This document shows, piece by piece, positions 40,559-61,152 of a stretch of 64,000 nucleotides of DNA. The notes beneath the pieces are model-generated. The model saw only the letters and a program-made list of their open reading frames with translations. It made no database searches and was not told the origin of the DNA. The stretch lies in sequence record NC_010811.2; one strand, 5' to 3'. The position numbers and the translations under genes are program-made. Within the stretch, counting starts at the first letter, position 1. Each line of letters opens with the position of its first letter.

Positions 40559-40575
40559 CTCCCATCGAAACGGAG
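40559..40575 (+). repeat. Start-associated element CTCCCATCGAAACGGAG (copy 1 of 7)
   Basis: 6 nt before ATG 40582. Confidence 0.9.
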
Positions 40576-40581
40576 CACAGC

Positions 40582-40899
40582 ATGTCCCTACACCAATCGC
40601 ACCCGCACCTGAACTACGCTCTTGAGGTGTACATCTCAAAGCATCAGTACATCGCATCGCCTCTGCAAGTCGTGAGCTACCTCACTGCGCCGACTTTCAA
40701 GGCGGATCTCGACGAAATGGGCGTAGATCCGGCACAAGCCGGTGCGCAAGCCGACACGTGGCTCAGTGCACCACTGAACATGGCCCTCTTCCTGAAAGAA
40801 GTGATCGAGGAAAACGAGCCGTCGGTACTCGGCGCTGAACATCACACTGGAGCCGAGGCGCTGGCCGCTCTGCTCTGGGTCGCAGACAATCTCGCGTAA
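40582..40899 (+). CDS. Early hypothetical protein
   Basis: First gene after the early promoter. Confidence 0.75.
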   Translation: MSLHQSHPHLNYALEVYISKHQYIASPLQVVSYLTAPTFKADLDEMGVDPAQAGAQADTWLSAPLNMALFLKEVIEENEPSVLGAEHHTGAEALAALLWVADNLA

Positions 40900-40909
40900 G
40901 GGGTTCAAC

Positions 40910-41608
40910 ATGTCCAACGTCTACACCGCAGACTTCGGCGCAACCAAGTTCCAGACCACGCGTCGTGGGGTCAACGCCACGTCGCCCATCCTCAAGAATG
41001 GCGTCAAGGTCGCCACGCTCCACGATGTGGCCGAGCGCATCTCCACCGACGTGGTGTTCGTCAACACCCAGGAGCGCTTTGCCTTCTTGGAGGCCGCTCA
41101 GTCGCACGGGTTCACGGGGTCCGAGCACTTCGCCATCTCCGAGTTCGCTCGCCATCTGCTGGATAAGGCGTCCAACGCTTTCCTGGAGGCTGTCGAGCCA
41201 TCCAAGCCCAAGCGCAAGGCCAAGCCGTTGCCCGCTCCTACGCCCGAGCCACAACGCACAGTTCCAGAAGCGGGCGCGGACTTCATCCGCGAAGCGTTCG
41301 GCATCGAAACGCAGTTCGAGCGGCAAGCGTACCAACCCAAGCGCAAGCGCCTGCTCTTCTCGTCGTCGGGCAAGGTTCCATCGTTTCCTGAGTTGGAACG
41401 CATCTGTCGCCAGTTCACTGCGCAGCGCTGCCAAAACGTCAACACGTCGGTCTTCATCAGCGAAACGCCAGTGTTCCACTCCAGTACGTGGAGCATTCGC
41501 GAGCTGACTGTATCGTTCGATGGGCACCGAGTAGTGTTCACCAAGTACCACAACGCTACTGACCTGCACATCGAGCTCATCGATCGCAGCGCTGTCTACG
41601 AGGAGTAA
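40910..41608 (+). CDS. Early hypothetical protein
   Basis: ORF packing. Confidence 0.75.
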   Translation: MSNVYTADFGATKFQTTRRGVNATSPILKNGVKVATLHDVAERISTDVVFVNTQERFAFLEAAQSHGFTGSEHFAISEFARHLLDKASNAFLEAVEPSKPKRKAKPLPAPTPEPQRTVPEAGADFIREAFGIETQFERQAYQPKRKRLLFSSSGKVPSFPELERICRQFTAQRCQNVNTSVFISETPVFHSSTWSIRELTVSFDGHRVVFTKYHNATDLHIELIDRSAVYEE

Positions 41609-41611
41609 ATC

Positions 41612-42040
41612 ATGGAAAAGTTCTTCGCAGAGACAGTCGTTACCCATGAAGGATTCGGGCGTGGGGTTGTTCTCGCAGAGACGGCGCCCGACGTGTACGA
41701 GGTGCGATTCGATCGGGTCATCGACCCTTTCGTCACCGATTACGAATGCTCTCGTACTCATACGGTGAGCGCCGAGCATCTAGAGCGTGTGGTCCTCACG
41801 TTGGCCGACTTTAAGCCCGGCGACAAGCTGGAATTCACCCAGCGCTTCCGTGTCGGCGACAAGACCGTGACCGAGGTGCGGACCGCTGTTGTCACCCTCA
41901 TCAACTGGGAAGGTAACGGCCTCGTGTCGTACACAGGTCGCGTTCAAGAAGGCATGATGCGGACGGGCTCCGGCGCGTTCGACCCGGCAGCGGTGGGCAC
42001 CAAGCCGTTCGGTTTCCACTGCGCAGTGCGTAAGGTCTAA
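41612..42040 (+). CDS. Hypothetical protein (SH3-like segments)
   Basis: VTHEGFGRGVV; FKPGDKLEF. Confidence 0.7.
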   Translation: MEKFFAETVVTHEGFGRGVVLAETAPDVYEVRFDRVIDPFVTDYECSRTHTVSAEHLERVVLTLADFKPGDKLEFTQRFRVGDKTVTEVRTAVVTLINWEGNGLVSYTGRVQEGMMRTGSGAFDPAAVGTKPFGFHCAVRKV

Positions 42041-42050
42041 GGAGTGGGTC

Positions 42051-42380
42051 ATGAAGTTCGTCAACAGCAAGAAGGTCAAGGACCATGCGTACGACCTGTA
42101 TCTGGTCCGTCAGCAGAAGCGTGAGCTCGCTGAGAAGATGCGCGAGTTGGAAGCGCAAGAGCAGGCGTTGTCCGCGTTTCTGCGCGCAAAGCGCGCCGAC
42201 GAGGACTTCCAGTTTGCAGATCCCGAAGGCTATCTGATGGAAACGGATTTCGTGCCGGGGTCGCGTATGGATGTGAACGACGCGCAGGTCCGCCGAGACT
42301 ACGCCAAGATGGGTAAGAAGGTGCCCATGAAGAAGAGCGAGTGGGTCACGGTCAAAGTCCGCTACATCCTGGAGAAGTAA
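42051..42380 (+). CDS. Hypothetical coiled-coil protein
   Basis: AAGGAG SD. Confidence 0.75.
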   Translation: MKFVNSKKVKDHAYDLYLVRQQKRELAEKMRELEAQEQALSAFLRAKRADEDFQFADPEGYLMETDFVPGSRMDVNDAQVRRDYAKMGKKVPMKKSEWVTVKVRYILEK

Positions 42381-42498
42381 TGACCACATTCCAAGCCATC
42401 GTGGTGGCACTCGTGCAGTACGCAGTAGTCATCGGCCCGATCGTGTTCGTGCTTGAGCGCCGCCGTCGGGCCTATCTCAAATCTCCGGGAGATTCCAA

Positions 42499-42807
42499 AT
42501 GAGCCCCTTCCGTCTGTGGGTCAAGATCAGTGGTAGAACCCTGTTGTGCATGCAAGCGATCAATCTGTACACTCTGTATCGGCATGAGGGGCGCTTCGAG
42601 GTATTCGCCATCGTGGTGGTCCTCACGCTTCTGCTGTCAGTGCTCATCGGTCTGGCAGTAGTCCTCTTGCAACAAGAACGGCGTGCGGCTGTCTTGCGCC
42701 CCGCCACCATCGAACCCAGCACGCAGACCGAGTGGGAATGGGCCGAGCACTGCCCGCGTCAAGCTGAGTTTCAACGTCGCATGAACGAACTGGCCACTTC
42801 CAAATGA
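42499..42807 (+). CDS. Membrane protein
   Basis: Hydrophobic segments. Confidence 0.6.
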   Translation: MSPFRLWVKISGRTLLCMQAINLYTLYRHEGRFEVFAIVVVLTLLLSVLIGLAVVLLQQERRAAVLRPATIEPSTQTEWEWAEHCPRQAEFQRRMNELATSK

Positions 42808-43517
42808 ACAAGGTCTCTCTCCGTGAGCGCGCTCTGCGCCTGTTGTCGTTGTCCATGTACGAGAACGCTGATATCGGGGACTCGTTGAAACAAGCATCGT
42901 TCTGCGAGCTTCAGCCGCCGAGCGACCAGTACATTCTGCGAATGATGGTGAAGGGGCCATCCACCCACGGATGGGCGATTCCACCGGCGCTGGATTGGTT
43001 GCGTTCCACCATTATCAGTCTGGACGAGTATCAGCGCGCAGTCATGCAGGTGGAGCATCCGTACGTCTACGTGACCGTGCGATCGGGCGTTGTGCGGTCC
43101 ATGACCGACGACGAGTGGCATGTGGATGGCTTCTCCATGCGCAAGCCGCACGCGCCGGAGCAGAACTACATCTGGTCGAGCCACACGGGCACCGAGGTCG
43201 CAGTGCAGAATTTCCGCATTCTTGACACCTTCGATCCCAAGCGGCACAACATCCATCAGTACTTCCAGCGGCGCGTGGATCCGCGTACCGTGGAGCGGCT
43301 GTTGCCCGGTCATCTGTACCTGATCGATCCGTACGTCGTGCATCGCCGTCCTGCGGTGGCACCCGGCACCCAACGCGCATTTGTTCGCATCTCGTTTGTG
43401 CCGATCGAAATCGAAGACGACACGTGCACTCCCAATCCGCTGCTGCCTGCCAAGCACTACGGCCGGACAGACATTCGCACGCATCTCATTGACTACGACA
43501 AGGATCCAACGCTATGA
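42804..43517 (+). CDS. 2OG-Fe(II) dioxygenase-like protein
   Basis: WHVDG (HxD)...VVHRRP (distal H)...RAFVRISF (2OG-binding R). Confidence 0.65.
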   Translation: MNKVSLRERALRLLSLSMYENADIGDSLKQASFCELQPPSDQYILRMMVKGPSTHGWAIPPALDWLRSTIISLDEYQRAVMQVEHPYVYVTVRSGVVRSMTDDEWHVDGFSMRKPHAPEQNYIWSSHTGTEVAVQNFRILDTFDPKRHNIHQYFQRRVDPRTVERLLPGHLYLIDPYVVHRRPAVAPGTQRAFVRISFVPIEIEDDTCTPNPLLPAKHYGRTDIRTHLIDYDKDPTL

Positions 43518-43795
43518 TCACGGCCAAAGAAGCAAGCGCTATGTTCAAACCTCAGTCGCCGAACATACTAGAACCGGAAGTGTGGGCGGCCATGGGTTTG
43601 TTGGATTTGGAAGTGCGTAAGACAGCCGTCTTGCGGCGGTCCTTTACTCGCCGTCTTCTGGTGGATCACGCCACTGCCCAAAGCATCTGCATGCTGTTGA
43701 AGGATCTGGGATTCCAGGCCGACTTCCAGCGTGCTGGCGGAAATTCTGAGGAAGACGAGTTGTCCATCTACCGCTTCCAAGTAAGCTGGGCGTGA
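43514..43795 (+). CDS. Hypothetical protein
   Basis: ATGA overlap. Confidence 0.65.
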   Translation: MITAKEASAMFKPQSPNILEPEVWAAMGLLDLEVRKTAVLRRSFTRRLLVDHATAQSICMLLKDLGFQADFQRAGGNSEEDELSIYRFQVSWA

Positions 43796-43888
43796 TGAGC
43801 GAGTTCCACACTGTAATGCTGGTGATTGGTGGCGAATGCGCGCTTGCCATACTCATCATTCTGCTGCGCGCATACCTGGAGCATCGTC

Positions 43889-44404
43889 ATGCAGTTCAAA
43901 TCGTTGGCCGTTCAACGGCCGGAGTTCAAGACCCAAGCGAAGAAGAGCGTCCGGCGTTGGCTGAAGGCGCTGGGCTACACCAAGATCAAGAAGCGTAACA
44001 TGCTGAACGGGGTGATTCCCGTTCTCGGAGCACCTCTCGCCTCGCGCAAAGACATCGACGTCATAGAGTTTCAGTTGCAGGACACGACGCCCGAACGCTT
44101 CCATACTCTTGTCTTGCACTGGGCACAGCGCAACGGCCTGGATCCACAGACGCAGGGCCTGACTGTAGGCGACGAGTCTTGGTCCGTAGTCTGGTTGCGT
44201 GCGGTGAACGGCTGGATCTTCGTCCCGTTCTGTAAGAAGTACGAGTCCGAAAACAACTGTCCCCCTTGGTTCGAGATGACGGTGGTGCTCGCCGCCAACT
44301 TCCTCGCACTCGAAACTTGGATTCAGTGGTCTACCCTGAAGAGTCCCTTCACGACGCTTCGCCGCCTGGACCAATTCCGTGCAATGAACAAGGATCCGTC
44401 ATGA
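43889..44404 (+). CDS. Hypothetical protein
   Basis: Start uncertain. Confidence 0.6.
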   Translation: MQFKSLAVQRPEFKTQAKKSVRRWLKALGYTKIKKRNMLNGVIPVLGAPLASRKDIDVIEFQLQDTTPERFHTLVLHWAQRNGLDPQTQGLTVGDESWSVVWLRAVNGWIFVPFCKKYESENNCPPWFEMTVVLAANFLALETWIQWSTLKSPFTTLRRLDQFRAMNKDPS

Positions 44405-44769
44405 TGAACACTGCCCTGCTGCTCGCAATCCTCGCCATCTGTGTGCTGGCATTGGTCCTCCTCTTCCATGTGCATCGACGGCTGCATCCGCGTCCTGATC
44501 CACTGACAGAAGAAGTTCAGTCACTGCGCAGGCGGATCGCTCCGTATGAAGCGCAGTTCGGCGTTCTGGACAGTGTCCAGCTCTGGAAGATCCTGCAGAA
44601 AGCCGACGATGCACCGGCCGTGAGCCCGCCACTCGTGTATCCGCACGACCTGACCGATGACCCGGACGTATCCGTCGATCGGTTCTACGCGCTGGAAGAG
44701 TACCACGATCTGCGGCTGGAGCTCGAATTCCTCGAAGAAGATCTCAAGCTGGCAGAAGAATTCTTCTAA
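44401..44769 (+). CDS. Membrane-anchored hypothetical protein
   Basis: N-terminal TM segment; ATGA overlap. Confidence 0.65.
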   Translation: MMNTALLLAILAICVLALVLLFHVHRRLHPRPDPLTEEVQSLRRRIAPYEAQFGVLDSVQLWKILQKADDAPAVSPPLVYPHDLTDDPDVSVDRFYALEEYHDLRLELEFLEEDLKLAEEFF

Positions 44770-44786
44770 CCCAAAGAAGGCACATC

Positions 44787-45401
44787 ATGTTGAACACCAT
44801 GGAGTTCGACCACATCGTTGCTGAACTGTCCAAGCATCTGGTGATGGGTCACATCGCTTTCGTGAACGGCGTAAATACGCAGCATGCCCGCCAACTGCAA
44901 CCGATGAAGGACGGGGTCTATGGGCTGTACTTCCGTCTGCAGGTTCACGCTTGGAACGGCGGCTACGAACGCAACGGGCAGGTGCATCATGCGGAGTGGG
45001 AACGACGTTACGACCGCGTGCTGCACGTGATCGTCACCGAACGTCACAACGTGTTCGTGGCACGCACCGATCGCACGCGCAGCACGGAGCTCCCGCCACT
45101 GGACCAGTGGGAGAACACGACGAATCACGACTCTTGCTGGTCGCAGAACGGCTTCGGCCTGCGCGAAGTCGTGAACGAGGCGTACGAAACGTGCTGGGCT
45201 CACATGCCGGAACCCCACAAGCTGCCTCCGGTCATGACGCCGATCATGTGCCAGTTTGAGAACTGGTGCTTCGGTGCACCGCCGTTCACCGCAGTAAAAG
45301 TGAAGGCAGTGGTTGATCCCGAAGACAGCTATCGCAAGGTGCTGCTCGACATCAAGCCGCTGACCTGCCATCTCAACATCATCGACCCGGAGGCTTCTTG
45401 A
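44787..45401 (+). CDS. Hypothetical protein
   Basis: ORF packing. Confidence 0.7.
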   Translation: MLNTMEFDHIVAELSKHLVMGHIAFVNGVNTQHARQLQPMKDGVYGLYFRLQVHAWNGGYERNGQVHHAEWERRYDRVLHVIVTERHNVFVARTDRTRSTELPPLDQWENTTNHDSCWSQNGFGLREVVNEAYETCWAHMPEPHKLPPVMTPIMCQFENWCFGAPPFTAVKVKAVVDPEDSYRKVLLDIKPLTCHLNIIDPEAS

Positions 45402-45772
45402 TCGCCGATCTCGTCTGGAATCTGTTTCTCGTCGCGCTGTACGGCGCGTGGTATGGCTGGCACATGACATGGGCTGGCCTTGTGCTGCTCACCATCATCT
45501 GGCTCGCGTCCATCATTCGCCTGATCGCGTCACAGGCCAAGGACATCACCAAGGGCTGGAACCGCCTGGAAGTGGAAGGGCGCTATCGCTCACTCAACAA
45601 CTTCGAGCGACTGCGTCATGTGGTGATCAGCGTGGCGCTGGCGGTCGCTGGTAGCCCGATCACCGCCACCGTCAACCTCGTCTGCTTCTTGATGTGCGAC
45701 GCGCAGTACCGACAAGCATCATGCAAGCGATCCTGCCTGCAGCGTGCTCACCCATACCGGGACGCATCATGA
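45398..45772 (+). CDS. Membrane protein
   Basis: Several hydrophobic segments. Confidence 0.6.
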   Translation: MIADLVWNLFLVALYGAWYGWHMTWAGLVLLTIIWLASIIRLIASQAKDITKGWNRLEVEGRYRSLNNFERLRHVVISVALAVAGSPITATVNLVCFLMCDAQYRQASCKRSCLQRAHPYRDAS

Positions 45773-45951
45773 CCCTCACGCTTTTGGACAAGAAGTACGA
45801 CGGTGAGTCACTGTACGACGTGGCGCGCGACGTTCACGAGGCGTTCGACAGCCGCTTCACTCCGGCCATGGCGCAGGTACCCAAAGACGAGCACGGGTTT
45901 GCGCAGGGCACCTTCACCATCCATATCACCTGGGAGCCGGATCAATCATGA
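45769..45951 (+). CDS. Small hypothetical protein
   Basis: ATGA overlaps on both ends. Confidence 0.6.
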   Translation: MTLTLLDKKYDGESLYDVARDVHEAFDSRFTPAMAQVPKDEHGFAQGTFTIHITWEPDQS

Positions 45952-46355
45952 CTGTTGCAACTATCGACGACATCGTACCCGGTGCCCTTCTGTATGAAGC
46001 GGTGACTCCCAACAACATGGAAGGGGCTTGGATCGAGACCTATTGTGTGATCGCCCCGCCGCACACGATGCAGTTGAGCACAGGCCCTGCTCTCTTCTTC
46101 GAGACGTACGTCAAGACATCGGGGAACAGTTGCGACTTGGTTGCGAGGACTTCATATCGCTGAAGCGACGCGGGCATCGAACATGAGGGGCGCCGCGTTC
46201 ACAACATCCACAAGACGTTCACCACGCTGGCCGAAGCCGAAGACACAGTCGCTCGCTGGAAGCGGCGCGAGCTGACCACCCAAGAACTGGAAGTAGTCGG
46301 CCCCCACATCAGCGAAGACGAGGCACCCGACACGCAGTTTGCACTCAAGGCATAA
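45948..46355 (+). CDS. Hypothetical protein with apparent frameshift near 46140-46165
   Basis: Coding-like reading continues in another frame (SDAGIEHEGRRVHNIHKTF...) to TAA 46355. Confidence 0.5.
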
Positions 46356-46357
46356 TC

Positions 46358-46823
46358 ATGAGCCTCTGCTATCCATTCACACTAGAACCGTACACAAGCC
46401 AACAGTTCGCATGTCGTTCCCTGACCTGCACGATCAAGGCGTCAACATCGCGTCTGAGGCGCGCATCGCCCGGTGTGGTGCCATCTCGTTGATGAGCGTT
46501 CTCCAACGCTATGTAGAGAAACGCTTGCCCATACCGCTCCCCGGCCCCGTGGGCGAAGGTCAGCGTACTATCGCGCTGCCTGCGACCCGTGTGCTGAAAG
46601 TGCATCTCTACAACACGATGCTGGAACGTGGCATGACGAAGGCCGATCTAGCTCGGTTGCTGAAGAAGCAGCCGCCGTCCATCGACCGACTCTTGGACAT
46701 GACTCACAACTCCAGCTCCAGCACGCTGGATGATGCGCTCCACGCTCTGGGGTTAGAAGTGCGACTGGCCGTGGTGCCCCGGCCCCAAAACGTCGTGTTG
46801 CAGAAAAACAACACTGCAAATAG
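46358..46823 (+). CDS. hicB: HicB-like antitoxin (with C-terminal HTH), apparently frameshifted
   Basis: MSLCYPFTLE in one frame joins VRMSFPDL...IPLP...KVHLYNTMLERGMTKADLARLL...TLDDALHALG in another. Confidence 0.65.
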
Positions 46824-46828
46824 GGGTG

Positions 46829-46857
46829 TTGCACGGTGTTGGAATTCCAGGCATAAT
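46829..46857 (+). promoter_or_regulatory. Sigma70-like early promoter
   Basis: TTGCAC-17 nt-CATAAT; 31 nt (46849-46879) identical to 60451-60481. Confidence 0.8.
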
Positions 46858-46918
46858 ACTTCACATGGGCAGCACGCAAACAAAGCAGTAACCGGCAACG
46901 CGCCCCACTCGTTAACCA

Positions 46919-46935
46919 CTCCCATCGAAACGGAG
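46919..46935 (+). repeat. Start-associated element (copy 2)
   Basis: 6 nt before ATG 46942. Confidence 0.9.
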
Positions 46936-46941
46936 CACACC

Positions 46942-47361
46942 ATGATCAAGTTCGACAAAGCCACGGCTCGCACCCTGTCCGCAGAATTCATTCAAGAGGT
47001 TGCAGAGCTCGCCAAGCGTCACGGCATCGTAGTCCAGCCGCACGGTGGCACAGTGGGCGACACGTATCTCGATCTCAAGTTCCGTTTCACAAACAAAGCT
47101 GACTGCAGGGCAGGCCGCTCAGCAAAAGCAAGAGGCGCGCGACACCTCGGTTCAAGGAGCTCGCCGCCGCATGGCGCTCCCTACGCTGATGTGTATCGTC
47201 TGCCGCTCAACGGCGTCGGTCGCAAAGTCAATGTGAACGGCGAGCAAATGAGCATCGTCGGGTTCGCGCCCAATCGTCCCAAGTTCCCGGTCGTGGTCAT
47301 GAACGCTCAAGGCAAGACCTTCAAGACCACGGTCGCAACGGTCGCCAGCCAGCTCAAGTAA
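46942..47361 (+). CDS. Early hypothetical protein (middle segment probably affected by indels)
   Basis: MIKFDKATARTL...; C-terminal SH3-like segment. Confidence 0.7.
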   Translation: MIKFDKATARTLSAEFIQEVAELAKRHGIVVQPHGGTVGDTYLDLKFRFTNKADCRAGRSAKARGARHLGSRSSPPHGAPYADVYRLPLNGVGRKVNVNGEQMSIVGFAPNRPKFPVVVMNAQGKTFKTTVATVASQLK

Positions 47362-47386
47362 AACGGCCGGGGCCGCTGGCCCTCCC

Positions 47387-47403
47387 CTCCCATCGAAACG
47401 GAG
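47387..47403 (+). repeat. Start-associated element (copy 3)
   Basis: 6 nt before ATG 47410. Confidence 0.9.
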
Positions 47404-47409
47404 CGCATC

Positions 47410-47627
47410 ATGTACTACGAAATCAACGTCGCTCGCAATGGCGACACTTCTTTGCTACCGCAGAGCGCAGATTCTTGACGCGCAGAAGGCAGCCACTCTG
47501 CTCGGCGGATTTCAAGCGTCGCTTCCCGGTATCCGAAGGGTTCAACGTCACGGTCAGCTATCACGAGCATCGTATCGTCGACGCAACCGAGCTTCTGCTG
47601 CCCCCAGCTTTGCTGCAAAATCCGTAA
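47410..47627 (+). CDS. Small early protein, frameshifted in this sequence
   Basis: MYYEINVARNG + (R)HFFATAER + FKRRFPVSEGFNVTVSYHE are distributed over different frames. Confidence 0.55.
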
Positions 47628-47653
47628 GTTTCCAATCGCTGTCAGTCACACTA

Positions 47654-47670
47654 CTCCCATCGAAAAGGAG
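47654..47670 (+). repeat. Start-associated element (copy 4, CTCCCATCGAAAAGGAG)
   Basis: 6 nt before ATG 47677. Confidence 0.9.
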
Positions 47671-47676
47671 AGCATC

Positions 47677-48108
47677 ATGAAGGTCTTCCCGCATCTGTCC
47701 AACGACGACACCGCCTACGTCTCTGTGTTCTTGAGCGCCGCGCAATACGCCTCGCTGCACAAGTACATGCACATGGAGCCCGGTCAACTGGTCAGCTTCC
47801 CGCATGGCGTCAAGCTGTTCAAGCGTGGCTTCGGCTGGTATCGTCTGGACACGAGCAACAATCATCGTGCTGGCGAGAAGCTGCGTCTGGCAGTCTGCAT
47901 CATCCGTCGCTGGTATCGCGAGCAGCTTGAAGCGCAGCACACCGAGCGCCGCGTCGAGGTCCAGGTTCAGCGCATGACCCAAGCCTCGGGTTCGCGTCAT
48001 CGCCTTATCAGAGCGACACGCACCAGTTCCAAACGCTGCCCGTTGCCTCCGCAGCCTGCGTCTACCGCGCAGCTCAGCGCGCTGGCCGCTCGTTTCGCTC
48101 GCCACTGA
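47677..48108 (+). CDS. Early hypothetical protein
   Basis: Start marked by the element; C-terminus may be frameshifted. Confidence 0.65.
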   Translation: MKVFPHLSNDDTAYVSVFLSAAQYASLHKYMHMEPGQLVSFPHGVKLFKRGFGWYRLDTSNNHRAGEKLRLAVCIIRRWYREQLEAQHTERRVEVQVQRMTQASGSRHRLIRATRTSSKRCPLPPQPASTAQLSALAARFARH

Positions 48109-48140
48109 TTGGCGCCCATCCCCCACTCTAGGAGCTGTTC

Positions 48141-48577
48141 ATGGCAACCACGAAAAAGCTGACCGCGAAGGAAAAGCGTGCTCGCATCATGTCCCACACA
48201 GGACGGGCCCTCGTCGAGACCCCGAAGGAATTGCCGCGTGCCACTGCGCGCTACTCCGACGACGAAAAGCGTCGGATCATCAACGAGGCGTATCACATCA
48301 GTAGTCCAGGTGTGGTGGCCACCTGCAAGAAGTACGGCCTGAGCCCCGCCACCATCTACAAGTGGAAGACGGCGTTGGGCATCACCGCAGAGCGTCCCCG
48401 CTTCGCCCAGCGAAAGCCAAGAAGGGCGTCCCGGTTCCGCTCAAGCTGTGGATGGCTGCTGCTAAGATCGACCCGGACGCGCTGAACGGCGAGGACAAGG
48501 ACTGCCAAGATGACGTCATGGGAAGCTATGGACGCCATGATCGCTGTTCCTGGGCTTCCACCTTCCACGTTGCCTGA
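48141..48577 (+). CDS. HTH DNA-binding protein (probable frameshift near 48400)
   Basis: YSDDEKRRII...VVATCKKYGLSPATIYKWK. Confidence 0.55.
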
Positions 48578-48601
48578 GCTACCCAGCGGAAACGATGCTG
48601 T

Positions 48602-48904
48602 GTGTCGTGTGGGAAGGACCTGACGCCGGAGCCGCTGTCTTGGGAACGTGGCGTGCAGGCTCTGAGCAATCTGCCCACAAAGGCAGAGGTCCTCAACTAC
48701 ACTCTGGGCTTCCACCTGTACAGCGACGAGCATCACGTGTACATTGCCCGCAGTGTGTCGCGGCGTCTGTCTCATTTGCAGGAAGACGTGCTGGCGATCC
48801 CCAAACAGGCCATCGTCGAGACGCTGTCGCTCCTCAGCTACGAGCATCAGGACGACCGCCGTGCGCGCATCGACGCCTACAAGAAGGCCAGCACGACCCG
48901 GTAA
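48602..48904 (+). CDS. Hypothetical protein
   Basis: ORF packing. Confidence 0.5.
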   Translation: MSCGKDLTPEPLSWERGVQALSNLPTKAEVLNYTLGFHLYSDEHHVYIARSVSRRLSHLQEDVLAIPKQAIVETLSLLSYEHQDDRRARIDAYKKASTTR

Positions 48905-48979
48905 ACCACGTCACTCCCTTCACATGTTCCAGGGGGCAGCGCGCCCCTTCTTTCGTTTACCCAGATACCAGGACTCATC

Positions 48980-49356: not shown

Positions 49357-49397
49357 ATGAAGCAACACTGGTAACACACATCGAACGAGGAATCATC

Positions 49398-52418: not shown

Positions 52419-52489
52419 AGCGGTAACGGGCTGACGTGCACCGTGCAACGTACGTCGTATCCAAACCTTTTCTCTAGAGGAAGACTCAG

Positions 52490-53298: not shown

Positions 53299-53349
53299 GC
53301 TACCAATCGGCCGGCGCACGCACTAGGGCAGGTGTTCTAGTGCACGAGC

Positions 53350-53381
53350 GGGAGCAGGGGCGAATCCTCTGCTCCCCTTTT
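53350..53381 (+). terminator. Rho-independent terminator
   Basis: GGGAGCAGGGG/CCTCTGCTCCC stem + CTTTT. Confidence 0.75.
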
Positions 53382-53417
53382 GTCACATCAGTAGCCCATT
53401 TCTACATCAGGCACACC

Positions 53418-53735
53418 ATGCAACCGGATAAACGAGAACATCTATCGGTGTACAGCAAGCTCTGCAAGTCCTGCGGGCATCTGGACCCGGATGAGCCCAA
53501 GAAGTACAGCAAATGCCACCACTCCAAGGGCAACGAATTCTGTCCGGCGGCGGAAGTGCAGATTGTAGTGGTGGGTCGCGCCCTGAAATACGCGAAGCAG
53601 GTGTTGGCTGCACGTCGTCAGCGCGACGCTAAGGGGGAGGCGAAGATCCTCCAACTGGTAACGCAGCAGAGCGCAGCGTTTGTCGAACGTTTCTACGCAT
53701 ACCTCGAGAACGGAGTTCCCGGTGAAAACCCGTAA
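53418..53735 (+). CDS. Small Cys-rich hypothetical protein
   Basis: CKSCGH...C...C. Confidence 0.65.
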   Translation: MQPDKREHLSVYSKLCKSCGHLDPDEPKKYSKCHHSKGNEFCPAAEVQIVVVGRALKYAKQVLAARRQRDAKGEAKILQLVTQQSAAFVERFYAYLENGVPGENP

Positions 53736-54489
53736 GGCATCGAAAGCCTCGGCCGCTTCCGACAGTGGCCAACAAAAGGTCATCAACCTGACCCGCATCA
53801 AACAGTGGTACATCCCAGCAGACAACGAGGCATATCTCACCCTGAAGAGGCACGGTGTGCCTCTGCTCAAGATCCATCAGAATTTCCTGCCCACGTTGCG
53901 TCTGCTCACGCAGAAGCACAATATCCGTGGGCGAGTCGTCGACTTCACCGACGAGATCCTGGATCCGTTCCTGGAGCGACTGGGCAACACGTGGAACACG
54001 AAATACGGCAAGGCCACCATCACCAACAAGGTCATGGTGTTCCAGGCTAAGGACGACAAGCTGGTCGAAGCGCGCGAGGCGGTACCCAAGTTGGAAGAGC
54101 GCCTGCGCCAATTCTTCGATCGCTGGGGCTTCAAGTTCCAGTGCGAGTTCTCCGAAGTCAAGAGCCGACTCAAGCTGCACGTCGAATACTGGTTCGACAA
54201 CAACAAGTCGCCGGTCATCCTCATGGACGAGCCGGAGGTCGAGCAACCGAAGGTCATGCTGAAGCTGGGCTTCACGCGGCTGGTCTTCGCCTTCGATCAA
54301 CACCAGAACCAGTTCGGCAAGGGTCCCGGCTATGTGCACCTCACCATCGAGGTGAGTCAAGGCGGGCGATGGGCACCGTTGCGCACCAGTCGCTGCACGT
54401 ACACCGAGTTGAGTTCGGTGCTGCCGCTGGTCACCGCACTGATGGACATCCCCAACAAGGACATTCATAATCTCGATAACCCCGCATGA
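53722..54489 (+). CDS. Hypothetical protein
   Basis: GTG start after GGAG. Confidence 0.7.
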   Translation: MKTRKASKASAASDSGQQKVINLTRIKQWYIPADNEAYLTLKRHGVPLLKIHQNFLPTLRLLTQKHNIRGRVVDFTDEILDPFLERLGNTWNTKYGKATITNKVMVFQAKDDKLVEAREAVPKLEERLRQFFDRWGFKFQCEFSEVKSRLKLHVEYWFDNNKSPVILMDEPEVEQPKVMLKLGFTRLVFAFDQHQNQFGKGPGYVHLTIEVSQGGRWAPLRTSRCTYTELSSVLPLVTALMDIPNKDIHNLDNPA

Positions 54490-55028
54490 AAAGGCTCACT
54501 CTTCCATCGCACGAGTATCTATCGCAGTGCTTCTCTTTCACTAAGAGCACGGGTTCTCTGCGATGGAAGAATCGTCCTCCGGAACACTTCCAGTCGGTTA
54601 CCCGCTGCCTCCAAGCGAATACACGTTACGCGGGCAAAGAGGCCGGGTGCCTCATGGTCGATGGACACATAGGTGTGCGTCTAGATGGAAAGCTGTATTA
54701 CGCACATCGCATTATCTGGATGCTCGTAACTGGAGTTGACCCCGGTATCTTGGAAGTCGACCACAAGAACATGGACAAGGCCGACAACCGATGGCGCAAC
54801 CTGCGATTAGCCACCCATGAGCAACAGAGCTATAATGTCCTTCGCCATTCCGGAAACACCTCTGGTGTAAAGGGTGTGAGTTTTAACAAACGCACCAGCA
54901 AGTGGATTGCATTAGTGCAGGGGCGTCGTAGGAAGATACGAAAGGAATTCGCCTTATTTGCTGAGGCCGTAGCTGCGGTTCGTGCCGCACGTAAGCAAGT
55001 TCATAAGCGATTCACCAATCACGGATAA
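54486..55028 (+). CDS. Free-standing HNH homing endonuclease with AP2-like DNA-binding domain
   Basis: YAHRIIW...VDHKNMDKADNRWRNLRLAT...NTSGVKGV...KW; AT-richer codon usage. Confidence 0.9.
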   Translation: MKRLTLPSHEYLSQCFSFTKSTGSLRWKNRPPEHFQSVTRCLQANTRYAGKEAGCLMVDGHIGVRLDGKLYYAHRIIWMLVTGVDPGILEVDHKNMDKADNRWRNLRLATHEQQSYNVLRHSGNTSGVKGVSFNKRTSKWIALVQGRRRKIRKEFALFAEAVAAVRAARKQVHKRFTNHG

Positions 55029-55039
55029 CTGAGCCAATC

Positions 55040-57688
55040 GTGACAACCAAGAAACAGACCAAGTACGATAGCACTAGCATCGAGACTCAACGCTTCCCTC
55101 ACAACGTCCGGGCGTCGCCAGCCATGTACATCGGCGGAGTCGATGCCTACGGCCTGTGGACTGTGACCAAGGAACTGCTGGACAACGGCGCCGACGAGTT
55201 CATGGCGCAACGCAACGACGCCGTGTTCCTGCACTTTGACGCTGATGGCAGCTACTGGGTCTGGGATCACGGGCACGGCATCCCACAGGGCGTCAAGACG
55301 TTCAAGCTGAATCTGAACGGCAAGGTGGTCACGCAGAAGATGCCGACCATGCAAGCGGTGTTCGGCGAGCTGCACACGTCGGGCAAATATCGCAGTGAGG
55401 CGTACGCAGTGTCCATCGGCAGTCACGGCGTCGGGTCCAAGGGCACCAACGCGACGGCCGAGTACTTCGATGTCTGGACGCTGTACGAAGGCCGCTGGAG
55501 CAGCATCAAGTTCAAGAAGGGTGAGCTGGCACAGCCGGTGAAGGAATGCTCGGCCCCCAAGCTGCCTACTGGCAAGCCGCTGAAGAAGGGCACGCTCATC
55601 CACTTCAAGCCGGACGCCAGCATCTTCAGCGTCAAGAGCTTCCCGCCGTCGATGGCTGTGGAATGGGCGACGGTCATGTCGTACATGAACCCCGGCCTGT
55701 CGATCCACCTGAGCAGCAAGAAGGGTGCGAAGACGTACCTCAGCAAGAAGGGGCCGCAGGAGTATATCGAGCATCGTCTGGCTGCGCTGAAGACGGAAGG
55801 CGAGCGTCAGATGTTCGTGCATCACGACGACCTGTCGGATGTGGTGTTGGCATTCACCAACTACGACGGTTGCGACATCCGCGGCATGACCAACTCCGTG
55901 ACCAATGGTCAAGGCGGCAAGCACGTGGACAGTGTGACGGGTGCCGTCTATGCTGGCCTCAAGCCGTGGATCAAGACCAAGAAGGTGAAGGAAGACGGCA
56001 AGGTGAAGGTGGTCCCTGCCTTCCGTGAGACCGACCTGAAGGAAGGGCTCGTTGGTCTGGTCAACGCCAAGCTGCACAAGGCCCAGTTCTCGTCGCAGGA
56101 CAAGGCACGACTCACAGACAACCGGCTGGGCAAGGACTACGAAGAGGCGATAACCAAGAAGTTCGTCGCCTTCTTCAAGGAGAACAAGGCGCTGGCCCAG
56201 CGTTTGTGTGATCGTGCCACCAAGCTCAACGAACTGAAGACCAAGTTCACGATGAGCAAGAAGGCAGCAGCTACGTTGAACGCTGTGAAGCGCAATGGGC
56301 TGCCCGCCAAGTACGCAGCGTTCAACTCGGACACGAAGGTTCACGATCGTGAGCTGTTCCTCGTTGAAGGCGACAGCGCAGGTGGTTCGCTGAAGGATGC
56401 GCGCTTGCCCTATCAGGCGGTCCTCCCACTCAAGGGTAAGGTGCTCAACGCACTGAAGGACAACAAGGGCAAGGCGCTGGAGTCGGATGAAATCATCAAC
56501 ATCCTGGCGGCTATCGGCTACGACACGAAGGCCGCTGACCCGCTGTCCAAGCTCACCGTGGGCAAGATCATCTGTCTGGCTGACCCGGACCCGGATGGTC
56601 CGTTCGTCGCAGACACGCAGGTGCGTTTCCGCTACAAGCGCACTGCGAATGACGGCCAGCCGCAACTCGCCACCATTGAATGCTTGGCGGAGATGGCGAA
56701 TACTCCTGGCCAAGAATTCGAGGTTCCGGTCTACGTGAACGGCAAGGAGCAGTGGGCACCGGCCACCGCGCAGTTGGAACGCAACGTGGACACGCTGGTG
56801 AGCATGGAGATCGGCGGTCACAAGTACAAGGTGAGCGAGGACCACAAGTTCCTGGTGATCCGTACGCCGTCCACGCGCAATCGTGAAGGGCTGACGTTCA
56901 GCGAGCATCTGTGCTTCATGCGTGCTGCCGACATGAACATCGGCGACCGTGTGTACGCGCCGCACATGGAGCAGGGGCGCCGCGACTACAACCGTCAGGA
57001 CAAGACGAGTGGCCACGGATTCATGGCTGTGAACAAGCTGCGAGTCCAGAAGCAGAGCGCTCCGGTCCCCGTCTACTGCTTGACGGTGCCGCGCCATCAT
57101 CACTTCCTGCTGCCGTCGGGTGTTGTGTCTAGCAACTGTCACATCAACAGCCTGCTCCTGGGTCTGTTCTACAAGTACCTGCCCGACCTGTTCGACAAGG
57201 GCATGGTGTACGTGAGCGCGGCCCCCGAGTTCTACTCGATCTACAAGGATCAGCTGGTGACCGGCGACACGCTGAGCGCAGTGCAGGTGAAGCTCAAGAA
57301 GCTGAAGGCTCCGACGTCCACCGCCATCCACCACTTGAAGGGGTGGGGCGAGGCCAGCGAGAACCTGATGCGTGTGCTGGCAGCAGACCCGGCAACTCGT
57401 CGCCTCATCAAGATCAAGGCCATCTCTCACGACGACAAGGTGGACTTCGTCAAGGTGATGAACGAGGACGTGGAGTACCGCCGTCGCATGCTAGGCTTGC
57501 CACAGAACGCGAAGGGCGACGAAGATGAGGCGCCGCCCGCCGCGAAGAAGGCACCGGCTAAGAAGGCGGCGCAGCCCAAGGCCATCCAGATGCGAGCCCG
57601 CGACGGACGTCCCCTGCGCGGCAAGATCATCGTGAAGCAGCCGCCCGTAAAGAAAACGGGTACCCGTCAACGTAAGGAGGCAGCATGA
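55040..57688 (+). CDS. gyrB: Type IIA topoisomerase large subunit (GyrB/ParE-like) with intein
   Basis: ELLDNGADE, DHGHGIP, HGVGSKGTNA, LFLVEGDSAGG, PLKGKVLN, DPDPDG|intein|CHI, KGWGE. Confidence 0.92.
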   Translation: MTTKKQTKYDSTSIETQRFPHNVRASPAMYIGGVDAYGLWTVTKELLDNGADEFMAQRNDAVFLHFDADGSYWVWDHGHGIPQGVKTFKLNLNGKVVTQKMPTMQAVFGELHTSGKYRSEAYAVSIGSHGVGSKGTNATAEYFDVWTLYEGRWSSIKFKKGELAQPVKECSAPKLPTGKPLKKGTLIHFKPDASIFSVKSFPPSMAVEWATVMSYMNPGLSIHLSSKKGAKTYLSKKGPQEYIEHRLAALKTEGERQMFVHHDDLSDVVLAFTNYDGCDIRGMTNSVTNGQGGKHVDSVTGAVYAGLKPWIKTKKVKEDGKVKVVPAFRETDLKEGLVGLVNAKLHKAQFSSQDKARLTDNRLGKDYEEAITKKFVAFFKENKALAQRLCDRATKLNELKTKFTMSKKAAATLNAVKRNGLPAKYAAFNSDTKVHDRELFLVEGDSAGGSLKDARLPYQAVLPLKGKVLNALKDNKGKALESDEIINILAAIGYDTKAADPLSKLTVGKIICLADPDPDGPFVADTQVRFRYKRTANDGQPQLATIECLAEMANTPGQEFEVPVYVNGKEQWAPATAQLERNVDTLVSMEIGGHKYKVSEDHKFLVIRTPSTRNREGLTFSEHLCFMRAADMNIGDRVYAPHMEQGRRDYNRQDKTSGHGFMAVNKLRVQKQSAPVPVYCLTVPRHHHFLLPSGVVSSNCHINSLLLGLFYKYLPDLFDKGMVYVSAAPEFYSIYKDQLVTGDTLSAVQVKLKKLKAPTSTAIHHLKGWGEASENLMRVLAADPATRRLIKIKAISHDDKVDFVKVMNEDVEYRRRMLGLPQNAKGDEDEAPPAAKKAPAKKAAQPKAIQMRARDGRPLRGKIIVKQPPVKKTGTRQRKEAA
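56600..57136 (+). mobile_element. 179-aa mini-intein, Pro1, class-3-like
   Basis: PFVADT (block A), VSEDHKF (block B), VYCLTV (block F with Cys), GVVSSN|C (block G). Confidence 0.88.
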
Positions 57689-58038
57689 TCGTCATGGAGT
57701 ATTCACCCGTTCTGGGCCAAGCGATCCCGGACGCCGCGCTTCTCAACCACGCGGACGAATTGATCGGCATCCACAACGAAGGGCGGACTGCGACCAGTTC
57801 AGTGTCCACATACCAAGCCATTACCGCACTGCGCCAGCGAGTGGCTGAGGGTCAGGTGTCCTACAGCGACGTGTTCGTGGTGTACGAGGGACGCTGGTTG
57901 CAGCTCAATCAGTTTGCAGGCTGGGCGCAGGATAATCCGGAAGGGTTTGGTGACCTGCACGCACGCATGCTGTCGCGCTTGGTCACCCTTGGAAACGCGC
58001 GCCGTCGCAAACTCAACACGAAGGAGTGTGATGACTAA
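57685..58038 (+). CDS. DUF3696-like small protein between topoisomerase subunits
   Basis: ITALRQRVAEG...DVFVVY...NPEGFGD. Confidence 0.5.
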   Translation: MIVMEYSPVLGQAIPDAALLNHADELIGIHNEGRTATSSVSTYQAITALRQRVAEGQVSYSDVFVVYEGRWLQLNQFAGWAQDNPEGFGDLHARMLSRLVTLGNARRRKLNTKECDD

Positions 58039-59572
58039 GAAGGCTAAGAAGCCTGTCGGCAGTCTGGTACCCGCCGCTGACCGACACGTAGTTGACGAGT
58101 CGTTGAAGGATTTCGGTCGTCGTAACATGACGATCTACGGCACCACGGTGAACTTGGACCGCTCGGTTCCAGATCTGTACGATGGGTTGAAGCCGGTCCA
58201 GCGTCGCATTCTGTGGTCGGCGTCGCAGGTGTGCCGCACGCAGTTCGAGAAGAGCGCACGGCTTACCGGTCACTGCATGGGTGCCTATCACCCGCACGGC
58301 AACAGCGCCATCTACTCGGCTGCTGTCAACATGGTGCAGCATCCGAGTCCAACGCTTCTGGGCAAGGGCAACTTCGGTTCGATGACGGACGGCGCGGCTG
58401 CTGAGCGTTACACCAACGTTCGCCTGTCGCACTACGGCCAGACATTCTTCGACAGCGACTACATCAACGCTGAGACCACGTCGTTCGTTCCCAACTACGA
58501 CGACAAGGATGTGGAACCCGTCACGCTGCCTGCGCAATTGCCGAACGTGTTGCTCAACGGCGGCGAAGGCATCGGCGTTGGCATCACCACCAAGCTGCCG
58601 ACGTTCACACCGGAGTCGGTGCTGGAAGTACTGAACCGCATGTTCAAGGGCGAGAAGCTTCAGGCCGTGGACTTTGCCAAGACGCTGAAGTACCATCACA
58701 AGTGGGGCGGTCAGCTCGTGCGGTCCAAGGAGAACCAAGCGCAGTGGAAGCAGATGTTCGTGGGCAGCATGGCCAACCTCCAGTTCGAGGCAGTGTTGGA
58801 CTTGGATCGTGACCACAAGCGCATGACCATCAGTTCGTGGCCTCCAGGTACAAACCTGGAAACCTTCATGAAGAAGGTGCGGGCAATGCCGGAGTGCCAC
58901 AAGTGCTTCAACTCCAAGGGCACGACCACGTATCAGATCGAGTGCAAGCCGGGCTTCAATTACGACCAGTTCGACAAGTTCGTCGAGAAGGTGCGCAAGG
59001 CCACGATGCAACGGCAGGCGTTCAAGATCAACGTGACGCGGCGTGAAGCAAAGACGGTGGACGGCGTCACCACGTTCAAGACTGAGTTCCTGGCGCTGTC
59101 GGTGCCGGACCTCATCTTGCAGTGGTGCCGCATGCGTGTGGCGCTGGAGCTCAAGTCGCTGGCGTATCGCATCAAGAAGCAGGAAGCGGCGATCGCCTAC
59201 TCCAAGCTGCTGATCTACGCAGTGGACAAGCTGGACCTGATCTTCAAGGCTCTGCGCCAGTCAGACCCAGATGCTTCGCTGCAGAAGCTGCTGAAGATCA
59301 CGGCAGAGCAGGCCAAGCAGATCTTGGACCTGCAAGTGCGCAAGCTGTCGAAGCTCGACCAGTCCAAGCTCAAGGGCACGCTGAAGACGCAGGAGCAGGA
59401 GCTCAAGCAACTCCAGACGTGGCAAGCCAAGCCCAAGGCCCAGGTGCTGCTGGATCTGGCGGCAGTGCAGCAGGCACTGGACAAGGATCGCAACTTCAAG
59501 CTCAAGGAAAGCACGCAGAAGCTGACCGTGTGTGATCTGAAAGGTGGGGCTACGGCCCACCCGCAACCCTAA
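58031..59572 (+). CDS. gyrA: Type IIA topoisomerase catalytic subunit (GyrA/ParC, T4 gp52-like)
   Basis: DGLKPVQRRIL, YHPHG, AAERYT catalytic Tyr; no C-terminal beta-pinwheel. Confidence 0.92.
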   Translation: MTKKAKKPVGSLVPAADRHVVDESLKDFGRRNMTIYGTTVNLDRSVPDLYDGLKPVQRRILWSASQVCRTQFEKSARLTGHCMGAYHPHGNSAIYSAAVNMVQHPSPTLLGKGNFGSMTDGAAAERYTNVRLSHYGQTFFDSDYINAETTSFVPNYDDKDVEPVTLPAQLPNVLLNGGEGIGVGITTKLPTFTPESVLEVLNRMFKGEKLQAVDFAKTLKYHHKWGGQLVRSKENQAQWKQMFVGSMANLQFEAVLDLDRDHKRMTISSWPPGTNLETFMKKVRAMPECHKCFNSKGTTTYQIECKPGFNYDQFDKFVEKVRKATMQRQAFKINVTRREAKTVDGVTTFKTEFLALSVPDLILQWCRMRVALELKSLAYRIKKQEAAIAYSKLLIYAVDKLDLIFKALRQSDPDASLQKLLKITAEQAKQILDLQVRKLSKLDQSKLKGTLKTQEQELKQLQTWQAKPKAQVLLDLAAVQQALDKDRNFKLKESTQKLTVCDLKGGATAHPQP

Positions 59573-59583
59573 AGGTTCATAAG

Positions 59584-60381
59584 ATGAATCCGATGTTCGC
59601 AGTACAGATCACCGGACGTGACGACCGCGAGTTGCACAAGACGGTGGACGCATTGAAGGCGGCTGGCCTTGACTACGAGACCTTCGGGTGTATCCCGTTC
59701 ACAGACGAGATCACCAACCTCGAAGCGTTCCCATCAGATCGCCGCGTGATACCACTGGCTGGGACCAAGGTTCTCAGCATGTGGCAGCGTGGGTGCCTGC
59801 CTCCAAACTGGCATGTATTCTACGATGCCGGACATCTGGACCAGTACCTCGCGCAGCGCTTCTACGGCACCAACCTGCTGAACTACTGGGCTGAGGTCCG
59901 GCCATTCTCGCAGATGAAGGATCGAGTGTGGGACGTGCCGATGTTCGTCAAGCCCACGGATGACGGCAAGGCGTTTGCCGGTTTGGTCCTTGAAGGTGAG
60001 AGCTTGAGTCAAGCGTTGGAAAAGCAAACGCACCAAGTGATCGCCGATGATCAGCCGATCCTCGTCTCCGACTGCAAGACGCTGGGCCGTGAGTTCCGCC
60101 TGTTCGTTGTGGACGGCTACGTGGTAGACATCTCAGAGTATCGGAATCGTGGCCAGATTCAACACAAGGATGTGGCGCCCCGGTTGAAGGCTGACCTCCG
60201 TGACTACTTCCAGTCCGTATGCCATCCCAGCGCGCCACGCGCTTACGTGATGGATGTTGGTGAAGTGTGGAAGAACGGCGAATGGCGCTGGTGCATCATC
60301 GAGCTGAACTGCTTCAACTGTAGCGGTGCCTACACTGTGGACCGTGCTGCGGTCTACGGTGCGGTCGCCAACGCGATCTAA
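59584..60381 (+). CDS. ATP-grasp domain protein (R2K/DUF4343-like)
   Basis: FVKP..GKAFAG, EFRLFVV, YVMDVG, IIELN. Confidence 0.75.
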   Translation: MNPMFAVQITGRDDRELHKTVDALKAAGLDYETFGCIPFTDEITNLEAFPSDRRVIPLAGTKVLSMWQRGCLPPNWHVFYDAGHLDQYLAQRFYGTNLLNYWAEVRPFSQMKDRVWDVPMFVKPTDDGKAFAGLVLEGESLSQALEKQTHQVIADDQPILVSDCKTLGREFRLFVVDGYVVDISEYRNRGQIQHKDVAPRLKADLRDYFQSVCHPSAPRAYVMDVGEVWKNGEWRWCIIELNCFNCSGAYTVDRAAVYGAVANAI

Positions 60382-60393
60382 AGCCGGGTTTGT

Positions 60394-60426
60394 GGGGTGT
60401 TGTAGATTCGCAACACCTCCATTTTG
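60394..60426 (+). terminator. Probable terminator hairpin
   Basis: GGTGTTG/CAACACC stem followed by ATTTT. Confidence 0.55.
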
Positions 60427-60430
60427 CTCC

Positions 60431-60459
60431 TTGCGCGTGCAGCGAAATTCAGGCATAAT
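60431..60459 (+). promoter_or_regulatory. Sigma70-like early promoter
   Basis: TTGCGC-17 nt-CATAAT. Confidence 0.8.
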
Positions 60460-60511
60460 ACTTCACATGGGCAGCACGCAAGCAACACCGCAGCAGCCCC
60501 CGGGTTACAAC

Positions 60512-60528
60512 CTCCCATCGAAACGGAG
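60512..60528 (+). repeat. Start-associated element (copy 5)
   Basis: 6 nt before ATG 60535. Confidence 0.9.
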
Positions 60529-60534
60529 CGCAGC

Positions 60535-60741
60535 ATGAAATCCCAAGTCCAGAATTTCACGGTGTACTATCGTGGCGTCACCATCGGTGAACATCGCGCT
60601 CGCACCGCGTTGGAGGCAGTCACCCACAACTGGGGTCCTGCACACAATGGCACGCTCGTTGCGATCCCATCCAACTCGCATCGTCACCTGCACGAGAAGG
60701 CGAGTGTCGAGAGCAAGGTCGTACCGCAGTCCGCAGTCTAA
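60535..60741 (+). CDS. Early hypothetical protein
   Basis: Start marked by the element. Confidence 0.7.
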   Translation: MKSQVQNFTVYYRGVTIGEHRARTALEAVTHNWGPAHNGTLVAIPSNSHRHLHEKASVESKVVPQSAV

Positions 60742-60754
60742 GTACACGATTCCA

Positions 60755-60771
60755 CTCCCATCGAAACGGAG
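60755..60771 (+). repeat. Start-associated element (copy 6)
   Basis: 6 nt before ATG 60778. Confidence 0.9.
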
Positions 60772-60777
60772 CGCATC

Positions 60778-61125
60778 ATGAGTCGCAAGCAGAAAATGAC
60801 GGAGTTCCAGCGTCAGCAGTATCTGGGCATCGCTGCAGTCCTGTGCGAAGTAGACACCGACGTCATCTATCGCGCGTTCATGGAGCAGCGAAAGCACGAT
60901 CGCAAAACGAAGACCTACAGCGCGCAGCAGCGCTACTCGCGCAGCGACACTTCTCGCATGCGGCTGTTCGCTCGCTTCTGCTATCATCGCCTGCAGTCCG
61001 AGCTCAACAAGTGCCGCGATCTGCAACAGGTCCAAGAGTTGAGCGCGTCGCTGAACGCAGCACTCTTGCCTACGAATGCCGAGCAGGGCTACGCGCTGGC
61101 TGAAACGCGCTTCGACCTGCTGTAA
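60778..61125 (+). CDS. Early hypothetical protein
   Basis: Start marked by the element. Confidence 0.75.
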   Translation: MSRKQKMTEFQRQQYLGIAAVLCEVDTDVIYRAFMEQRKHDRKTKTYSAQQRYSRSDTSRMRLFARFCYHRLQSELNKCRDLQQVQELSASLNAALLPTNAEQGYALAETRFDLL

Positions 61126-61135
61126 ACCGAACACC

Positions 61136-61152
61136 CTCCCATCGAAAAGGAG
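61136..61152 (+). repeat. Start-associated element (copy 7, CTCCCATCGAAAAGGAG)
   Basis: 7 nt before ATG 61160. Confidence 0.9.

Follow-up and report, generated by a model that had tools for sequence, protein, structure and literature searches.

Seven copies of a 17-nt element, CTCCCATCGAAAMGGAG, stand directly before start codons in the 64,000-nt stretch of sequence record NC_010811.2 that was analyzed here (the window), which corresponds to bases 167256–231255 of the 231,255-bp genome of the Ralstonia jumbo myovirus phiRSL1. The 17-mer is best explained as a candidate ribosome-binding module of the immediate-early genes in phiRSL1-like jumbo phages, a reading drawn from sequence comparison. 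The positions of the copies had been given in an earlier note on this DNA and are accurate; the motif has exactly seven matches in the window, with no mismatches and all on the + strand, and none in 100 dinucleotide shuffles. The same note placed each copy 6–7 nt before an ATG. This is correct as well, the distance from the GGAG of the Shine-Dalgarno sequence (SD) to the ATG being 6 nt at six copies and 7 nt at the copy at 61136. The proteins encoded downstream of the copies are mutually unrelated and are not paralogues; the conservation therefore belongs to the element itself. Paralogous genes that had brought along their own upstream regions were rejected as its source on the same ground.

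Whole genomes were scored with a covariance model built from the element family. In the phiRSL1 genome, 11 copies are exact and three more are close variants; every one of them is on the + (coding) strand. These 14 copies score 22.9–28.7 bits and the next best match scores 14.8 bits. All 14 are confined to an ORFan-rich, non-structural + strand block that extends from 205 kb in the genome across the origin to 44 kb; in the covariance model scan the element was absent before the same-strand structural genes at 64–88 kb and from the minus-strand blocks. The proposal that copies occur only in three early islands is thus correct within the window and incorrect genome-wide, where there are seven more. 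Genome-wide, the spacers measure 5–7 nt and 13 of the 14 copies precede an ATG. The block has 136 + strand gene starts, 43 of them with GGAG at 5–8 nt, and 13 of these 43 carry the element. The remaining 30 GGAG-type ribosome-binding sites have no conserved upstream sequence in common. The element is a discrete class, distinct from the general ribosome-binding site of the phage. A partial variant suggested at about 49379 was rejected as a member of the family; although it shares the loop and the spacer, neither the 5′ arm nor the GGAG is present, and the covariance model does not recover it even with a cutoff of E ≤ 10.

Eight of the 14 copies lie 20–60 nt downstream of a repeated sigma70-like promoter (TTGcaC-N17-CATAAT), from which they are separated by a partly conserved leader. 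The other six are intergenic and begin just past the stop codon of the preceding gene, so the first one to three genes of each unit are marked. In two of the operons in the window, copies are found at the boundaries of all three genes. Nine of the 10 sites that contain one of three −10-type words (GCATAAT, GGTACAGT, and GCTATACT) precede a copy or a degenerate copy. A simple consensus promoter scan did not flag these promoters because their −35 boxes match at only three of six positions. Promoter, leader, and element make up a repeated cassette of ∼85 nt, at which metagenome contigs break, and the leaders hold no conserved structure beyond the 4-bp hairpin described below. The view that the element is a discrete unit tied to gene starts, incorporates the SD, and marks the first one to three genes behind sigma70-like promoters was upheld, and the genome-wide motif scan that had been recommended as a check gave 14 copies on one strand, all in the ORFan block and eight of them behind such promoters. 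We infer from the promoter-like sequences that the element genes are expressed early.

Conservation of the element extends across the clade. ORF317 (window 47677–48108) is the most conserved element-associated protein, and every relative has it, even Burkholderia phage BCSR5, which is more distant (30% identity). Its metagenomic homologues, at 39–86% identity, are encoded on contigs of 48–60% G+C, one of which (G001) is a 215-kb, 91%-complete IMG/VR genome. All ORF317 orthologues among the metagenomic relatives carry the element. In phages at 39–47% protein identity the element family is kept before the ORF317 orthologues as well as before neighbouring and other genes, always on the coding strand and 4–9 nt before the start. 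The family consensus is YTCY-NNW-CGWAAM-GGAR, in which the first three loop bases are variable. G001 has 9–11 copies, all on one strand. Four of its element genes have a homologue in phiRSL1, and in three of these cases the phiRSL1 gene is preceded by the element as well. The G001 orthologue of the 139-aa protein that starts at ATG 46942 begins directly 3′ of its own copy. BCSR5 has no member of the family (best match 14.7 bits). Its ORF317 orthologue is preceded by a degenerate form that agrees at 13 of 17 positions, and several early-region genes of this phage (34198–40617, locus L136) are preceded by a purine-rich ribosome-binding word of its own (tCAAAGAAAGGA) that has no hairpin.

Across 301 Burkholderiales genomes, a set that represents the order and not R. 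solanacearum specifically, there were four element matches at ≤1 mismatch versus six for a reversed control. Exact matches to the 17-mer in GTDB were scattered across all phyla and were mostly located within genes. With the Burkholderiales count at chance and the GTDB matches scattered, a host-wide or host-lineage element was rejected. The exact 17-mer also occurs once in each of three unrelated high-GC IMG/VR contigs (L010:11766, L011:1537(−), and L014:1214), 6–10 nt before small open reading frames (ORFs) and directly after sigma70-like promoters; the encoded proteins are unrelated to phiRSL1. By a rough estimate these matches exceed chance somewhat.

It had been suggested that CTCC can pair with the GGAG and so conceal the SD. 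To examine the arms, 52 elements were aligned with an anchor on the 3′ half only and the 5′ arm left unconstrained, which gave 48 distinct rows. The arms are paired in 94.8% of cells, as against 34–57% with slid partners. The closing pair covaries: among the distinct rows it is C-G in 32, U.G in seven, and U-A in four. At the two inner C-G pairs, the only departures are to U.G. GGAA arms are matched by a TTCC or TTCT 5′ arm at no fewer than four separate loci (at least four; Table 1), and the likely L152 counterpart of the G001 site at 92369, which has near-identical flanks, carries U.G. The U.G intermediates argue for selection on RNA and not on DNA. The covariation score was matched by 11 of 500 shuffles, and Fisher's test on the distinct rows, with two non-family rows kept in, gave p = 0.02. 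These alignments suggest, with moderate confidence, that the CTCC and GGAG arms pair in RNA and that the hairpin is conserved by compensatory change. Taken alone, the hairpin has a folding energy of −2.5 kcal/mol (z = −1.1). The 56-nt contexts are no more structured than shuffles, and the hairpin is part of the minimum-energy fold of some copies and not of others. A hairpin of this energy is too weak to hide the SD without help. The pairing that had been proposed is therefore supported by the C-G/U.G/U-A covariation, and the unaided concealment of the SD is not.

The loop is 9 nt long and has a conserved 3′ half, CGAAAM. Position 7 of the loop is T in 13 of the 14 phiRSL1 copies and in close relatives, and A in nearly all copies from distant relatives. 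Several of these sites are orthologous between genomes, and their flanks are mutually non-homologous. Selection by a common reader is therefore the simplest explanation of the concerted change, rather than gene conversion.

The weak stem, the sequence-specific loop, and the concerted change within each genome lead us to read the element as a shared translational operator. In mRNA, the 17-mer would form a 4-bp hairpin around the 9-nt loop, with the GGAG of the SD as its 3′ arm and a 5′ arm, CUCC, that mimics the anti-SD. The loop and the stem would be recognized by a trans-acting factor that clamps the hairpin; this factor would most likely be an RNA-binding protein that the phage encodes and produces later than the first gene products. 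The SD of about 14 genes would be hidden at once, resulting in joint shut-off of the early proteins. We assign a probability of about 0.4, a value that is an estimate of our own, to a regulon-wide translational operator bound by a putative trans-acting factor; the element genes are probably controlled together. We are more tentative about a dedicated phiRSL1-like translational regulon, in which one putative RNA-binding factor would read the SD hairpin before every immediate-early gene and co-evolve with the loop. If it exists, such a regulon would parallel T4 RegA by means of a hairpin and would open a first way into the mechanism of "start-associated sequences" as a whole.

The operators of the RNA-phage coat protein/replicase system and of T4 gp43 are weak hairpins that contain or abut the ribosome-binding site, have a sequence-specific loop, and repress once they are clamped by protein. 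The phiRSL1 hairpin is like them in that it includes the SD and is conserved by compensatory change. It differs in that those operators each control a single gene and have known binders, whereas the phiRSL1 element would serve about 14 genes and its binder is putative. By analogy, an SD held in a conserved weak stem, limited to one class of genes and co-evolving genome by genome, would be expected of a protein-clamped operator.

A number of points weigh against the operator reading. Most of the observations would be compatible with a host-made factor or with the absence of any factor. The covariation involves a single base pair and a few changes, in sequences that are related to one another. 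Searches for RegB and RegA (PF10715 and PF01818) gave no match in six frames of the 231-kb phiRSL1 genome, and no CsrA homologue was found in phiRSL1, the phage being all that was searched. The T4 RegA/RegB precedent cited in the earlier note thus has no homologue encoded by phiRSL1 behind it. There are 29 phiRSL1 proteins common to G001 but not BCSR5, and the 10 candidates tested among them have no informative Pfam family. Family scans, comparative filtering, and a fold search yielded no candidate binding protein. ORF317 was modeled as a family with AlphaFold (pLDDT 77.6), giving a small β-sheet domain followed by a ∼48-residue helix, and this model has no significant match in the PDB (best E = 0.17). 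None of the RNA runs searched contains phiRSL1, and these runs hold no expression, 5′-end, or ribosome data for it.

The best PDB match of the ORF317 model is a weak resemblance to the Rpb11/L subunits of RNA polymerase (E about 0.2). The element-associated proteins match no Pfam family, and the sole PHROG match among them is that of the phage's own ORF315 to a HicB-like family. No Rfam family matches the element. An antisense RNA regulator was considered and is not supported, as no reverse-strand copy was found at up to four mismatches; only one stretch of ≥11 nt is complementary (window 34030), which is what chance would give, and G001 has nothing equivalent. A literature text search for the motif returned nothing relevant, within a coverage that did not extend to the 2010 phiRSL1 genome and microarray paper, which may mention the motif.

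The main rival to the operator is a portable, purely cis-acting ribosome-binding module that combines a good SD, ideal spacing, an A-rich enhancer, and a weak hairpin. The hairpin would insulate the site from upstream sequence, so that host ribosomes translate the first messages efficiently and independently of context. We hold it to be somewhat less likely than the operator. It would account for the GGAG at 5–7 nt, for the unstructured surrounding regions, for the cassette-like use before unrelated genes, and for the distant BCSR5, which repeats its own purine-rich word without a hairpin. The A variant can also extend pairing with the 3′ end of 16S rRNA (our comparison of the A and C variants uses the generally known pairing of this tail), but the commoner C variant weakens it. 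Moreover, the 5′ arm that pairs with the SD is kept by compensatory change, which is a cost to initiation, and the GGAA copies retain the stem yet weaken the SD. An insulator would need neither a loop that is conserved at 40% protein identity nor concerted change in each genome. Alternatively, an endoribonuclease of the phage or of the host could process the messages at a site in or beside the hairpin, either inactivating early messages jointly or trimming polycistronic transcripts. The GGAG of early ribosome-binding sites is what T4 RegB targets, a sequence-specific loop would suit a nuclease, and the copies bound all three genes in two operons of the window. We judge this unlikely, since the RegB family has no match in six frames, Rfam is likewise without a match, and translation better accounts for the fixed distance to the ATG.

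The element might instead act at the level of DNA, either as the operator of a DNA-binding regulator or as a short homology handle for the swap or deletion of cassettes. CTCC-N9-GGAG is an inverted repeat in DNA, and the repeated ∼85-nt cassette breaks metagenome assemblies. In a read-level metagenome comparison that covered window 42300–48200, close relatives were present in three metagenomes, and in one of them (run X1) a 21-kb contig joins window 46852–46936 to 47655–47681. The contig starts in the promoter-leader, passes through an element, and leads directly into the gene that in phiRSL1 is the third of its operon (genome 7859); two element copies may have been the endpoints of a deletion or rearrangement here. 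This single joint is the sole hint of the cassette shuffling by homology that the earlier note had raised. The U.G intermediates make sense in RNA only, the single-strand orientation and fixed ATG spacing hold in every genome, 17 nt of homology is very short, and the intergenic copies have no promoter to control; we therefore hold a DNA-level role to be quite improbable. Least probable of all, in our estimate, is an antitermination hairpin of the nut/boxB kind that is loaded onto RNA polymerase after early promoters. Eight copies do place a small hairpin with a purine-rich loop 20–60 nt past an early promoter. However, there are up to three consecutive copies per operon, the leader has no other conserved structure, and the element is tied to the start codon, with the SD forming part of its stem.

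The closest described analogue is the start-associated sequences (SAS) of cluster K mycobacteriophages, which are short asymmetric repeats that share one orientation and number 11–19 in each genome (Pope et al., 2011; PMC3203893). They lie 3–7 bp before mostly ATG starts of unrelated genes, in the non-structural half of the genome only, are absent from hosts, and contain an SD core together with conserved positions that are unable to pair with 16S rRNA (PMC3203893). Their function was still called untested in 2025. The earlier note had named SAS as a precedent, and the comparison is apt; copy number, orientation, ATG distance, restriction to non-structural genes, and absence from host genomes (Burkholderiales) all agree. 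The two have no sequence similarity, however (GGGATAGGAGCCC versus CTCCCATCGAAAMGGAG). The SD lies between GGG/CCC ends in SAS, whereas it is the 3′ arm of the stem in phiRSL1, and the phiRSL1 leaders lack ESAS-like upstream 17-bp inverted repeats. The phiRSL1 case also concerns Gram-negative hosts, virulent jumbo myoviruses, and an RNA hairpin supported by covariation. Given the different sequence and the lack of ESAS, we regard the element as an analogue of SAS and not a homologue.

Other systems resemble the element in part. T4 RegA and RegB exert coordinated post-transcriptional control over many early genes through their ribosome-binding sites, with GGAG as the RegB target, but their homologues are absent from phiRSL1 and the T4 targets share no common 17-nt hairpin. 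T4-type PeSL cassettes are repeated units of an early promoter and a stem-loop that flank small ORFs and are a possible recombination substrate. In phiRSL1, by contrast, the conserved unit continues as far as the start codon and is found at promoterless sites as well, and recombination is a single hint. CsrA/RsmA sites have their GGA in a hairpin loop, whereas in phiRSL1 it is in the stem and there is no phage CsrA. Lambda nut sites number one per operon and come with boxA, unlike the up to three copies per operon found here.

SAS have been known since 2011, and the phiRSL1 element is an independent, sequence-unrelated example from Gram-negative jumbo phages. It is experimentally tractable, being only 17 nt long and offering natural compensatory variants (CTCC/GGAG and TTCC/GGAA) and loop differences among relatives. 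The genes that it marks, about 14, are all ORFans and likely serve host takeover in the immediate-early phase; the phage itself is studied as a biocontrol agent against bacterial wilt.

Table 1. Element copies, predicted promoters, and related sites. Positions refer to the window unless a genome or contig is named.
Feature	Position	Strand	Remarks
Copy 1, C variant	40559..40575	+	6 nt 5′ of ATG 40582, ORF300 (105 aa); 26.3 bits
Copy 2	46919..46935	+	6 nt 5′ of ATG 46942 (139-aa protein)
Copy 3, intergenic	47387..47403	+	6 nt 5′ of ATG 47410
Copy 4, A variant, intergenic	47654..47670	+	6 nt 5′ of ATG 47677, ORF317 (143 aa)
Copy 5	60512..60528	+	6 nt 5′ of ATG 60535 (68 aa)
Copy 6, intergenic	60755..60771	+	6 nt 5′ of ATG 60778, ORF338
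Copy 7, A variant, intergenic	61136..61152	+	7 nt 5′ of ATG 61160 (71 aa)
Loop-like remnant 5′ of ORF322	49379..49391	+	outside the element family; kept in L155/L156
Sigma70-like promoter, TTGCGC-N17-CATAAT	40503..40531	+	predicted from sequence only; short conserved leader to copy 1
Sigma70-like promoter, TTGCAC-N17-CATAAT	46829..46857	+	conserved ∼60-nt leader to copy 2
Sigma70-like promoter, TTGCGC-N17-CATAAT	60431..60459	+	conserved leader to copy 5
GGAA loci	phiRSL1 genome 7836; G001 92369; L152 11351/11527; L152 13245 / L154 4720		
Annotated starts that disagree with the element	46339–47627, 60424, 61076; genome 7388–8389, 30890, 43520, 43963		
Single-base indels	47095, 47145, 47179, 47444, 47507, 47991, 48005, 48043		

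The element also corrects the public annotation: for no fewer than seven ORFs (ORF019, 061, 087, 088, 315, 337, and 339), the start given in the record differs from the one that the element defines. ORF315 is annotated from 46339 and so spans an internal promoter; its element-defined start is 46942. The annotated starts of ORF337 (60424, with the element-defined ATG at 60535) and ORF339 (61076, with the ATG at 61160) are too early, as are those of ORF061 and ORF088. ORF019 is two genes fused, the second of which runs from genome 7859, right after a TTCC..GGAA copy, and has a signal-peptide-like N terminus. Single-base indels relative to the phiRSL1 record are common to contigs of two or three independent metagenomes. 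The gene after the copy at 47387 has 22 aa in the record and is an intact 69-aa ORF in the relative L156, a segment of the 139-aa protein is frame-shifted in the record compared with the metagenome contigs, and ORF316 appears to be frameshifted. The indels are probably either sequencing errors in the record or strain-specific frameshifts.

Several minor observations were made at other sites. At genome 43579–43606 (locus L135), a copy with a broken closing pair (ATCC..GGAG) is followed by no ATG. An ATC stands where the alignment of the G001 orthologue begins, which itself has an ATG after its own element; at the phiRSL1 site the start may be decaying, the start codon may be a rare one, or the record may be in error. 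On the minus strand of the window (34024–34044), the same 9-nt loop (CAUCGAAAC) is closed by another stem, of 3 bp (GGC/GCC), and precedes a gene start on that strand by ∼50 nt. This is a single case, and the 11-nt match does not exceed chance. In a distant relative, a gene that lies a few kb upstream of element-bearing genes (L151:6326–6718) codes for a protein with the Acb2/Tad1 hairpin family (anti-CBASS/Thoeris sponge type). Between the stop codon at 47361 and the copy at 47387, window 47365–47381 holds a GC-rich hairpin (GGCCGG / CTGGCC) that lacks a U tract, and G001 has a similar strong hairpin just 5′ of its own copy at 139361.

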